A DNA stretch of 64,000 nucleotides from Scyliorhinus canicula (Eukaryota): assembly GCF_902713615.1 (NCBI RefSeq), contig NC_052157.1:130243425-130307424 (forward strand), read 5' to 3'. Positions 13,411-52,329 of the stretch are shown here, in pieces. Positions within the stretch are counted from its first letter, which is position 1. Each line of letters opens with the position of its first letter. The position numbers and the translations under genes are program-made. A model generated the notes under the pieces. That model saw only the letters and a list, made by a program, of their open reading frames with translations. It ran no database searches and was not told the DNA's origin.

Positions 13411-13803
13411 GGGGCAGGAACGCACTGGAGAACCATTCAAATTCATTAATGTCTATCAGGCATCCTGTACTGCATCTCTGAACTGCCAGCTCTGTTTGCA
13501 GTTTGAAATGCACTTTAGCACTGTGTACTTAGTCTATAATTAACACATCAGTAATTCATGTGAATGTGTACAAGTATGATGGTTAAAAGACAGGTGTCAT
13601 AATTAGCAGCTGCCGTTTTGCTGAAAGGTTTCCAAAATTCAACTCGCTTTAAAGAAGGCCAGTCAGAAATTTATTTCCCATAAGATGTGCAGGTTAGGTG
13701 GATTGGCCATGATAAATTGCCCTTAGTGTCCAAAATTGGCCTCCTTCTGCACTGTAAATTCTATGAAAATTCTATAATTGTGGAACCGTAGTTTGTTTCT
13801 CCA

Positions 13804-14552: not shown

Positions 14553-14885
14553 ATCATAGAATTTACAGTGCAGAAGGAGGCCATTCGGCCCATCGAGTCT
14601 GCACCGGCTCTTGGAAAGAGCACCCTATCAAAGGTCCACACCTTCACCCTATCCCCATAACCCAGTAATCCCACCAACACTAAGGGCAATTTTGGACACT
14701 AAGGGCAATTTATCATGGTCAGTCCACCTAACCTGTACATCTTTGGACTGTGGGAGGAAACCGGAGCACCCGGAGGAAACCCACGCAGACACGGGGAGGA
14801 TGTGCAGACAGTGACCCAAGCCGGAATAGAACCTGGGACCCTGGAGCTGTGAAGCAATTGTGCTATCCACAATGCTACCGTGCTT
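14553..14885 (-). mobile_element. HE1-type V-SINE
   Basis: Head, V-domain and CR1-type tail gatgggccgaatggcctccttctgcactgtaaattctatga. Confidence 0.9.
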
Positions 14886-15463
14886 TTCATGATTTAACTT
14901 CTATCGCTTCTGGTTTCCACTGGCTAGCCATTCTCAGTTAGCTGTTTTCCTGTAATTTCTTATTCATGCATTAGAAATTTCAGTTGAAGCAGTAAAACGT
15001 ACAATATCGAATCAACTGCCCATAGTGCAGCTAGCCTGTTTTCTTCCCATTGACTTGAATCCATTTTATTCCGCACCCAGAAATGGAAAGGTCTGCTCAT
15101 CGATTAATTGGCACATATTTCTCACTTTTTTAATTCTCCGTCTTTTCAGTTTCAATTTGTCGATTGTTTACTTTTGAGGGGTTTTTTTTCATTTGTTCAT
15201 GAGATATGGTTGTCTTTGGCAAGTCCAACATATCGAGTTAGGAGCATAAATAGGCTATTCGGCCCCTCGAGCCTGCTTCTGTTCTACCTTTTAATATGAT
15301 CATTCTGTTTGTGCTTTGACTTCCACAATCTCCTCTACCCCATTAACGTTTGATCCCCTTGCCTAACAAGAATTTATCCGTCTCTGCCTTAAAAATATTC
15401 AATGACCCACCTCCACCGCCTTCTAAAGCAGTGTTCCAAAGTCACACAGCCTTCTGAGGGAAG

Positions 15464-47200: not shown

Positions 47201-50200
47201 ACATCCCGGCCCAGCATACGTAGGGGAATGGGGCCGGAGAGGGCATTTCCAACTATTCTATCTCAATTTCCTGTTCATCCATGTGGCACTAAAAACAGGG
47301 GTGTGTGCTCATCCACCATCAATAAAGTTGAAGTGGTAACTCGCATTGGTCTCCTCCTCGTCTGAGATGCTCTCCGAAAAGGGGCCCAGTTTCAGAGACA
47401 CAACGGGTAAGTGAGATTTTATCAACCTTTATCAGTTGATTAGGCACCCAACAATTTCCAAAAAGTCCAATAGCCACCAGATCATGGTACAAAACACTGT
47501 GGCACCATGTCTGGCCTGGGATGTATTGGTATCATGTTATTGGTCTGGGTTGATGAAATTGACTATTTCAAACAAGACGTTTAATCTTGCAGAGTGCTAC
47601 TTCTGTCTGACAGCTGGCAAAAAGGTGTGGAGAAAAACTGGTCTCGTCTCTTGCTCCTGTTCACAATTGTGTGGCTTCATTGAACTTTTATGGAAAGTAC
47701 TAAATCAAGTGTTTTGGCAGATTTAATAAGCCCTTCCTTTTTTATTACTATGGGCTGTAATCAAACATTGCTCAATAAATTCCGTGGTATCATCTTTTAT
47801 ATGGATATTCTTTATTTACTCGAATTTACTCTTTCTTTATGACCACACGATGTGTGTGACTTTGTCACCTTGATGGGTTTTCAGCACATCTCTTAAAAGA
47901 GTTACATGGCAAGGCATAAAGGAAGGTGAGCAATGTTCTGGTTAGTGCATGGGGTTGGAAGATTAGCTTCCAGTTAAACAGCACATTGAGATTGCAAAGA
48001 GTCAAATTCAGCCTTAGCCAAACAGCCAGTAAGGGTAACAATTAACAAGAGGATCGAGTTTGTCCTGAGGGCCGATCTTGAATCTAGACAGTGTTCACAA
48101 AGGACAAAAACGTCTGCAATTCTTTTTCTCTTCTTTTAATAAATCAAGGTGGAAACTATTAGGCCCCTGGAGATTTATCTTAAATTGATTATTTGTTCAC
48201 TTAGATTAAATACAATAAATTCATCCTCTTGCATCGCTGGTATTCTGGCAGCTTCCTCAATTATGCAAATGGATCTAAAACATTTATTTACCCAGAACCA
48301 TTTCCTTATCCACCTGCACTCACCTTTAAAAACCCCACATACTCATTTATCACCCTGTCTCTCAATTTGCTTTCAAAAATGTTGCTAACGTTTGCACGTT
48401 ATGTTATAGGACTGGATTATTGAGTCATAGAACTGAATTATCAAAGAGCTTTTGCGGTGCAGGAGAGACTTAAAGGTCACGACCCCGGATGTCACATTGG
48501 ATACTGATGGGATAGTTTTGAGTTTTCAAAATACCGGTGGAGGGGTTGGGATGGGGGGGGTGGAGGGGTTGTGATGGGGGGTGGAAGGGTGGGGGGGGAA
48601 CATGGTGACTACCAATTAACAGCGCGCTAGCTTCCTTAAGGAATTGTTAAGGAGCCTTTCCATTAATGAGTGACCTTTTCCTTTTCTCAGCGAGTCTGAA
48701 CAGAATTGGGCATGTTAGTGCGCAGCCAATCGGGTTCACCAAGGAGCCCAAGAAAATGTCTTCGGTTTTGTTCTCAACTCTAATCTGTGGAGCTAACTAC
48801 CTCCCGGCTGATTTCCACTCCTAACCTTCTCTTCCAGGACTACTTTCTACCTCGTTCCATCCTCCGTGGCCTTCTGAGGAGCTGTCCACTACAAGCGTGA
48901 AGACGATACTCTGGGCTGAATAATATGTGGCTCACACCCAGAGGGGTGGGGGGGGGGCGGCTTTATTCCGTCCCCACCATCAAACTGCATTATATAAAAC
49001 TGCAATCATGCAAATTCGTGCTAGAGGCTGGGTTTCTAACCCACAAGGCCAAATGTCATTTTGCAGTCACTTAATCTGTGCTGGAGGTTGTGGATCCCGG
49101 CGTCCAAAGCCTTTGCCATGACGAGGGAGCTCGCGACCACTCATTTAAAGGGTCACCTGACATCGGACATTGGCAGGTGAGTGAACAAACGTGTGCCTTC
49201 TCCATACATACAGTGAATTTATTTTGAGGGTATAATATCAGACTTGGTTTCAATCTTTTTTTGAAATGTACATGGTCCAAGTTGAACTGACCACAGATAT
49301 TGTACAATTTGAACATGAACGAGCTTTCATGATCTTAACATAGAGGAGCTGTCTAGTTCTGGCATGTTTTCCTCCCTAAATGGCCGAGGCAAAGGAATGA
49401 GGGGAAAGGCAGGAAAGGACAAGGACAGCCCAAAGGTTTGATGAGGAATCCCTCCATGCCCTGGCTGTGTGCACCAGGCGAGAACAATTAAAGCCAACAG
49501 GCGGTAAGAGGAGACCTTGCTTCGTGGGACGGGCAGCCCGGGGAGGTCACCAACCTGGTCATAGTGCCTCACGCCTTGACGCAATGTTAGAAGAGGCTGG
49601 GCGACCTGTTAAAGTTGTCCAGGCTGAGAAAGTCCTCAGTATGTGCATCCTTGTGCCAGCAAACTATAGGGAAGGATCGGGAATGCTGGAGCCTTGTGAA
49701 GATGTCTGAGGTCTAAGGTAGCATTTTACAGCAATGGCACTGTTCGTAGCGTCAATGCCTCAGTGGAGTTATCATGGTAGTTCCGTGGGTGGAGTAGGGT
49801 GGAATAGCCCGTACTGATGAAGGTGCACAGTGCCTTGACTGCCAAGCATTGTGATGATCAGGCATTTCTCTGTCCCCTTGGAGGCGGAATAACATCCATA
49901 ACATAACAGTGTTAGTCATTGCAATGTTACATCATGTTTCAGGAAAGATGTGCCCACAGTGTCAGGGAGTGAAGCATCCTGGAGGTGGAGGTCCAGGCCT
50001 AATGCTGGATGAGTAGGAGTTTCTCCTGCTCACCTCAGCAGAACCTGCGCAATCCATTGACCGAGCTGAGATTGGAGGCTCTGGTCAGCTTGCAAGTTGG
50101 GAAACAGATGGGGAGAGGGCAAGTGGAAGGGGGATTGATGTTTGCTATGCTTTCACAAATATAATAATTGTCACCTCAGTGCTTGAAGCCAGGGAAGCTT

Positions 50201-50284
50201 CCTCGTAGATACCATTTGATGTTGCTGCAAGTGTGATTTATTGGTTGAAATTCGTCATGTGAACATAGTAACACACAAGCACAC

Positions 50285-51530
50285 ACAATAGGAGCAGGAG
50301 TAGGCCACTCGGCCCCACTGCAACATTCAATAAGATTATGGCTGATTTTAATCTCCCACCTACCCCTGACACCTTTCGCTCCCTTTTTTTTTATCAGCAA
50401 TCTATCTATCTTTGCCTTAAAAATAATCAAAACCTCTGCTTCCACTGTCTTTTGAGGAAAGAAGTTTCAAAGACAAACCACCCTGAGAGAAACAAATTCT
50501 TCTCATCTCTGCCTTCAATGGACCACCCTTTATTTTTAAACAGCAACCCCAGTTCTAGATTCTACCACAAGAGGAAACATCCTCTCCGCATCCACCCTGT
50601 CAAAACACCTCAGAATCTTATCTGTTTCTATCAAGTCACCCCTCACCCTTCCAACCTCTAACAGATAGAAGCCTAGCCTGTCCAATCTTTCTGCAAAAGA
50701 CAACCCATGCATTCCTGGTATTAATCTAGTCAACATTCTCTGAACTGCTTCCAATGCATTGACATCCTTCCTTAAATTCGGAGACCAATACGGAACATAA
50801 TACACTAGGGGCAGTACGGTAGCATTGTGGAAAACAGCTAACTGAGAATGGCTAGCCAGTGGAAACCAGAAGCGATAGAAGTTAAATCATGAAAAGCACG
50901 GTAGCATTGTGGATAGCACAATTGCTTCACAGCTCCAGGGTCCCAGGTTCGATTCCGGCTTGGGTCACTGTCTGTGCGGAGTCTGCACATCCTCCCCGTG
51001 TCTGCGTGGGTTTCCTCCGGGTGCTCCGCTTTCCTCCCACAGTCCAAAGATGTGCAGATTAGGTGGATTGGCCATGATAAATTGCCCTTAGTGTCCAAAA
51101 TTGCCCTTAGCGTTGGGTGGGGTTACTGGGTTATGGGGATAGGGTGGAGGTGTTGATCTTGGGTAGGGTGCTCTTTCCAAGAGCCGGTGCGGACTCGATG
51201 GGCCGAATGGCCTCCTTCTGCACTGTAAATGTCTATCTATGTGGTCTCTTCAATTATCTGCACATTTGAAACATCACCTCCTACTTTTATATTCAACTCC
51301 CCTCGCAATAAACAACAGCGATCTATTAGCTTTCCTAATTACTTGCTGTACTGCATAACAGTCTTTCTCAATTAGTGCACGAGGACACTCCGATCCCTCT
51401 GAATCTTAGAGTTCTGCAATCTCTCATCGTTTACATAATATGCTTCTCTTCCTGCCAAAATGGACAATTTGCCCACAATATGCCCCATTTGGCAGAGCTT
51501 TGCCCACTCACTTAACTGACCTATGAATGT
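50285..51530 (-). mobile_element. CR1 fragment with an inserted V-SINE (50808-51240, + strand)
   Basis: YWSPNLRKDVNALEAVQR and RGDLIETDKIL motifs. Confidence 0.85.
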
Positions 51531-52329
51531 CTCAGCCGCACTGTGGATGGTCACCAAAGTCATCCATGGGCAAATGGTGTAGCAGACCTGGAGCTTCTCT
51601 CTTGTGCAGAAGCAAGTGAGGGGGCCGCACTATTCCAGAGCACTCGGAAACATTTGACGAAATCTCCACAATAGCCACCAAGCGAGTCGCAGGTGTAGAT
51701 TTAGTGTTTCTGTTCACTATATGGGTGGGATTTACTGACTACCCCGCTGTTGTCATTAGGATTTTGCGTTGACAGCACCCCTCGTGGCCAAGAAACCCAT
51801 ACGCCAGCGTGGGGCCGGTATTTCCCGCCTTCGTGAACAGCCGGTAAATCCCACCCTCTGTCTCATATTGATTATGTTAATAAACCTAATGTTTACAATG
51901 CCTCATGCAGAAATTCATTCAACATGTAATTTTCCTTGAACTTCTTTTGGCAGATAAACGTGAGTTTAATAATGGGAGGCGGGGCAGGATGCTCAAATGT
52001 CAAGGACTCGAAACGGTGAATGATAAGACGCTGCCACGAATCTCACGGTCCACACGACAAAATGTTGAGGCAAATGCAGTGCCTGCATTTCTGAGGTTTG
52101 GACTTCAGAACCAATTGGAAATTTTCCTTTATCTAGGCTTCCTTTGTATCACAGCCATTCTTGCAATCACATCCCGGGTGTCACACCTCTATATCAGGGT
52201 TCCCCCCACCTCATCTTCCCCTCATCCTCAGATCAATGACTGCAATTTGTCATCCCCTCTTCCTCAAGGGCATCCTCTCTCCGAATGGTGAGGTTATGCC
52301 AAGACCATGAGTGGCACTGATAATTTTTT

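Follow-up and report, generated by a model that had tools for sequence, protein, structure and literature searches.

Results

Two inverted copies of a tRNA-derived SINE lie 36 kb apart

The window analysed here, a stretch of 64,000 nucleotides, contains two closely related SINE copies in opposite orientation and 36 kb apart: SINE B, on the plus strand at 50808–51239, and SINE A, on the minus strand at 14556–14884. The two are 93% alike over 408 nt, whereas the rest of the copies in the window stay at or below 85%, and they belong to one SINE subfamily. Aligning B with nine other SINE copies in the window gave the plain 5′ end of the element as gggcagcacggt....

The element is tRNA-derived, with an A-box-like motif (TAGCATTGTGG) and a B box (GGTTCGATTCC); its middle is strongly conserved, and its tail ends in ...ctgcactgtaaat(tctatg). 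Scored against the generally known A-box and B-box consensuses, TAGCATTGTGG agrees with TRGCNNAGTGG at 10 of 11 positions, while GGTTCGATTCC is an exact B-box match. ARAGORN called no tRNA anywhere in the window, as expected for a decayed SINE head, and no Rfam family matched in 50600–51400. This SINE resembles HE1, a family within the V-SINE superfamily. Described from sharks and rays, HE1 has a tRNA-derived head and is partnered by the LINE HER1; V-SINEs and HE1 are recognised by a conserved central domain of ~80 nt and by a 3′ tail held in common with HER1 (PMC4824008, PMC3747384).

In SINE A the first ~4 nt of the head are missing, the B box is mutated (ttct) and 11 nt are deleted; with at least nine private substitutions, A is the older copy. 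A third copy of the subfamily lies at 13682–13775 on the plus strand, ~800 nt from A and inverted relative to it. In this copy the 5′ truncation falls near SINE position 240 and ~100 nt have been lost internally (...ccaaaatt now abutting ggcctcc...); the tail is identical to the tail of A (14554–14583) at 30 of 30 positions. Both A (14677–14711) and B (51079–51113) contain a 16-nt tandem duplication in which aaattgcccttagtgt occurs twice at a spacing of 19 nt. The older SINE copies of the window show no evident sign of this duplication, which is probably a marker of the subfamily.

SINE B contains an exact copy of the head and upstream flank of SINE A

Positions 50829–50950 of the plus strand are the exact reverse complement of 14829–14950, matching at 122 of 122 nt both by script and by direct reading. 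At A, the matching tract (14829–14950, minus strand), which we regard as the donor, consists of 64 nt of upstream flank and the first 56 nt of the SINE, together with a terminal GG. The first-pass annotation of this DNA had already described an inverted 122-nt copy with ~65 nt of non-SINE sequence, and our script reproduced it in full, placing the non-SINE part, of 64–65 nt, at 50831–50894/5.

Read along the plus strand, B opens with its own 5′ head (50808–50830), which alignment with the other SINE heads of the window equates with SINE positions 1–23. The last two bases of this head, the GG at 50829–50830, are also present in the flank of A (14949–14950) and form a microhomology at a non-homologous junction. 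A 64-nt non-SINE insert follows (50831–50894), an exact inverted copy of the A upstream flank at 14885–14948. The SINE head then restarts (agcacggtagc..., ~50895–50950) with a segment equal to 14829–14884 of A that includes both TAGCATTGTGG and GGTTCGATTCC, and past it B continues in register with the SINE to the tail. The alignment with the nine copies thus agrees with the anatomy proposed at the outset, namely a normal start at 50808, a switch at GG into foreign flank, a restart of the head and divergence thereafter. Position 50814, in the first head of B, is a private T; the restarted head and the other copies have C there. Because the direct repeats 50813–50836 and 50895–50918 are spaced 82 nt apart, B carries 82 nt beyond the plain SINE; these are 64 nt of A flank and 18 nt of duplicated head.

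The two borders of the tract differ in the homology available to them: one junction lies inside the SINE homology of A and B (at least 35 nt), the other shares only GG, a weak microhomology expected by chance in about 1 of 16 cases. On the left, identity stops past the common GG, before which B reads ...gcattgt and A reads ...aattaca. On the right, the first mismatch is position 50951, where B has G and A has T (at 14828), and ~20 nt past this border, 11 nt of B are absent from A. The right end of the copied tract lies somewhere between 50898 and 50950; the restarted head at 50895–50950 may be donor-derived, or its right part may be B's own. The T at 14828 and the 11-nt deletion are both private to A, and the right end could reach 51028 if both arose in A after the copying.

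A BLAST comparison against the window placed the non-SINE piece at two sites, A and B, the remaining matches being of 10–16 nt and attributable to chance. An exact match of 64 nt in non-repeat sequence is beyond chance. Exact-pattern scans returned no occurrence of the subfamily head in metagenome contigs, and none of the 64-nt core either there or in prokaryote genomes, all of them collections without this genome. The start coordinates of the two tracts, 14829 and 50829, are exactly 36,000 apart despite the inversion. A pasted or planted block, as this offset might suggest, was considered and ruled out: a pasted block of equal length would not give a SINE in register after the tract, and we therefore judge the offset to be a coincidence.

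SINE B is a single insertion in an older repeat

The left flank of B (50702–50807) is part of an older interspersed repeat. Together, the flanks 50702–50803 and 51240–51330 are colinear with 809–910 and 917–1008 in another copy of that repeat, with ~6 nt unaccounted for. Since the flanks are contiguous in the older repeat, B represents one simple full-length insertion to which the 82 extra nucleotides are internal. We also considered a nested arrangement, in which a unit of the 64 nt plus a SINE had entered an older SINE; the contiguous flanks, and the lack of any older-SINE remainder after B, ruled it out.

Over a longer stretch (50300–50807 and 51240–51740), the older repeat around B matches 486–1154 at ~65% identity. 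An open reading frame of 89 amino acids on the minus strand (50536–50805) ends at the insertion point of B. A Pfam scan of this frame gave nothing above threshold, and for this reason we do not call the flanking repeat a LINE. Protein look-ups with the 89-residue frame, with a 46-residue frame beside A and with the 42-residue reading of the tract gave no match in collections to which this genome does not belong.

Beyond the copied part (14951–15240, minus strand), the upstream flank of A is unrepeated in the window, showing short weak matches only, and it bears no sign of a junction except where identity with B ends. Just past that point lies a small AT-rich hairpin (14954–14979, minus strand; arms at ~14973–14979 and 14954–14960), with a 7-bp stem, a 12-nt loop and a few outer pairs. 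Its predicted folding energy is −6.4 kcal/mol (z −2.3), and 5 of 200 shuffled sequences fold as well. As a speculation, such a hairpin might have favoured release of the copying end.

The tract was transferred after both insertions had begun to decay

The 269 columns aligned outside the tract contain 14 substitutions between A and B (5.2%), and there are indels of 11 nt and 1 nt, all falling in the rest of SINE B (50951–51239, plus strand). Polarising the substitutions by the other copies, with positions 50991–51027 skipped, assigned 9 to A and 4 to B as private changes and left 1 open. Within the tract there are no differences in 122 nt, against 6.4 expected at the outside rate (Poisson P = 0.0017). 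Zero divergence in the tract set against 5.2% outside it indicates that the transfer took place after both insertions had begun to decay. The event had been called recent at first pass; it does postdate both insertions, but it is recent in a relative sense only: at the 95% level, a 122-nt tract free of differences still permits a combined divergence of up to ~2.5%, which is nearly half the distance between A and B.

The divergence between A and B is therefore uneven along the element, which argues against the even decay expected of subfamily copies. In another SINE pair, by eye, the 5′ part of the alignment is also somewhat less diverged than the 3′ part, which weakens this test of heterogeneity as far as the 56 SINE bases are concerned and leaves it as it stands for the 64 non-SINE bases of the tract.

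These figures bear on an alternative origin of the 64 nt as part of a multi-copy SINE variant, either as an internal insert or through a 5′-extended master. B would then be a full-length copy and A a 5′-truncated or plain one, and the loci would never have been in contact. Of the subfamily copies in the window, both that have a head also have the 64 nt, 5′-truncated subfamily copies such as that at 13682–13775 exist, and with three copies in 64 kb the subfamily looks abundant. Independent copies, however, should differ evenly along their length, and the ~6 differences that this predicts for the tract are absent. Furthermore, no other copy of the 64 nt, even a diverged one, is present in a window with more than ten SINE copies, and A would need to begin no more than 2 nt from the border of the insert. 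We consider a SINE variant an unlikely source of the shared sequence.

The borders support copying from A to B

The position at which identity ends also speaks to direction. A and B cease to match no more than 2 nt from the point where the foreign piece is joined to the head that is B's own. Copying from A to B needs no coincidence at this point, because the join is simply where copying ended. If instead the 64 nt were native to B or to a SINE variant, then the truncation of A, or a tract copied from B to A, would have to end on the join, a condition satisfied by ~3 of ~430 positions.

This requirement weighs on a transfer in the reverse direction, by which the 64 nt would have originated in B, perhaps through an insertion that made a 15–18-nt target duplication, and would later have been copied into A. 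The insert in B is indeed surrounded by an exact 15-nt direct repeat (50816–50830 and 50898–50912) that resembles a target-site duplication. The same bases are found in the same order in the donor, and because of this, and of the missing poly(A), we interpret the repeat as homology and not as a target-site duplication. The insert ends in ...catgaaaa followed by gc, all of which are also bases of the donor, with no poly(A) or LINE tail and no other terminal signature. A reverse transfer would, in addition, have had to stop in A within 2 nt of the left border of the insert, and the upstream flank of A is free of any further trace of a junction. We regard this direction as very improbable. LINE-mediated insertion of a retroposed fragment (a class 1 templated insertion) was likewise considered and set aside, there being neither poly(A) nor a true target-site duplication.

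The sequence borders thus support A as the donor and B as the recipient. On this point the first-pass annotation, to which A looked like the donor and its flank like unique DNA, is borne out as to direction, while the uniqueness of the flank applies within the window.

Sequencing-run word counts around the junction

We examined word counts in sequencing runs from two individuals of one species and from a probable sister species. Runs of the source individual contained 5–6 of the 12 sampled words (31-mers) of 50770–50900. Of the 101 possible words of this interval, 42 lie inside the shared tract, and 5–6 of 12 is about the number expected from locus A alone. Runs of the second individual (X4–X7 and X23–X25) contained none of the 12, although in X4–X7 the fraction of words present across the surrounding 3 kb (49300–52300) is ~0.36. 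The zero count in the second individual may reflect a polymorphism at B, in the A flank or at both, or thin coverage.

The junction between head and insert in B is accordingly known from the assembly alone, and this, together with the contrast in the second individual between 0 of 12 words at the junction and ~0.36 around it, is what an assembly or polishing artefact would have in its favour, with sequence of locus A wrongly built into SINE B. Words spanning the junction nevertheless require that some read contain them. To its right the insert continues in register with the SINE and to its left the head is intact, a pattern that looks biological rather than like the product of a collapse or mis-join; the window is free of N, and nothing else irregular lies near the insert. 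We therefore think it highly doubtful that the structure is an artefact.

A model of break repair in SINE B templated on SINE A

Taken together, the copy is probably best read as the outcome of a break in the head of B that was repaired by invasion of A through SINE homology and closed by rejoining at microhomology. A and B would have been independent old insertions of one tRNA-derived SINE subfamily, inverted and 36 kb apart. Later, a break in the head of B, or a detached replicating strand, would have arisen just after SINE position 23 and the A box. The body-side end of B would have paired with the most similar nearby SINE, copy A, and been extended on it through the head and then for 64 nt into the upstream flank before being released. 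The new end would then have been joined to the retained head of B at the two-base GG, giving an 82-nt templated insertion in B and an unchanged A.

Within this model we infer the break itself, the strand invasion, the use of DNA rather than RNA as the template and the enzymes of joining; the exactness of the copy, the positions of its borders, its direction and its date after both insertions are the observations on which it is built. Of the copies in the window, A is the closest to B in sequence even though one other sits just 6.6 kb away, and this fits a choice of donor by homology.

These data do not discriminate between MMBIR, joining by polymerase theta and homologous repair that finished in end joining. 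Polymerase theta could have made the final join, and a replicative template switch, or an RNA template in the form of a transcript through A, would give the same product. The first-pass annotation had proposed a SINE-guided template switch of MMBIR or polymerase-theta type. Guidance by the SINE is consistent with the homology on one side and the GG on the other, while the classic polymerase-theta pattern is not seen. Physical contact between the two loci, which had been taken as implied, follows only if the template was DNA and not a transcript of A.

An identical final structure would also be produced by template switching of reverse transcriptase at the time B inserted. The cDNA would have been started on an ordinary SINE RNA, switched within the SINE homology to a transcript running through A (head and 64 nt of flank) and then, at GG, moved to another SINE RNA, whose 5′ end completed it. 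With only 4 private substitutions in 269 positions (1.5%), B is little diverged, and the probability of finding none in 122 nt since its birth is as high as 0.16. Against this, the scheme calls for two template switches, for transcription reading through A, and for a landing in a SINE RNA that still yields the canonical 5′ end. Mutations of A since the birth of B would moreover add differences, and none are seen even though they are expected for A. Reverse-transcriptase switching thus seems to us an improbable origin of the insert, and repair of B templated on A remains our preferred reading.

Discussion

We have described a SINE whose head is interrupted by an exact copy of the head and flank of a related SINE. 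Most likely, the patch in B is the scar of DNA-break repair of a known kind and calls for no new mechanism. There is a small chance of something less familiar, either that the retrotransposition machinery laid the patch by multiple jumps, involving SINE RNAs and a host transcript containing SINE A, or that such repair regularly provides SINEs with foreign leaders. If this were true, a leader acquired by repair in a master copy could give rise to new SINE subfamilies with inserts in the head.

If confirmed, the locus would provide a clean natural example of such repair in the germline of a cartilaginous fish, and would show that dispersed SINEs act as donors in break repair over tens of kilobases, moving unique flank from one locus to another. 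B also illustrates how a SINE may gain an internal insert and a duplicated head without retrotransposition. The process is already known from reporter systems and human polymorphisms, and B adds an instance to it, not a principle.

Gene conversion between dispersed SINEs is known for primate Alu elements. The transfer described here resembles it in passing between non-allelic copies of one SINE family. Ordinary conversion stays within homology, however, whereas the tract in B leaves the SINE and takes in flank that is unique within the window.

Insertions made by polymerase theta are usually of a few to tens of nucleotides and are copied from near the break. In B, 82 nt have a source 36 kb off, and one junction lies in at least 35 nt of homology. 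B has in common with polymerase-theta insertions and MMBIR/FoSTeS template switches (for example PMC7165422, PMC8421209) the templated extra sequence and, at one of its two junctions, microhomology. MMBIR starts at microhomology (PMC8421209).

Class 2 templated sequence insertion polymorphisms are patches templated from distant loci at breaks (Onozawa and Aplan 2016, PMC5110952). As characterised there, they share with B a short patch from a distant locus at a presumed break, with neither poly(A) nor a true target duplication. That review presents the templated insertions as RNA-derived, and its abstract is silent on repeat homology as a guide to the donor (PMC5110952); in B, SINE homology accounts both for the donor and for one of the junctions.

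In PMC5104497 (2016), gene conversion is described that exhausts the available homology and finishes by rejoining to the second end through microhomology; the paper cites for it the term 'coupled homologous and nonhomologous repair'. As in those cases, one junction in B is homologous and the other a microhomology, and flank of the donor was copied while the donor itself was left unchanged. The cases in PMC5104497 come from reporter constructs in cultured mouse cells, with a sister chromatid or an engineered sequence as the donor. Here, in contrast, the event would belong to the germline of a shark, with a break that is deduced from its product, and the donor would be a dispersed inverted SINE, ~5% diverged and 36 kb away.
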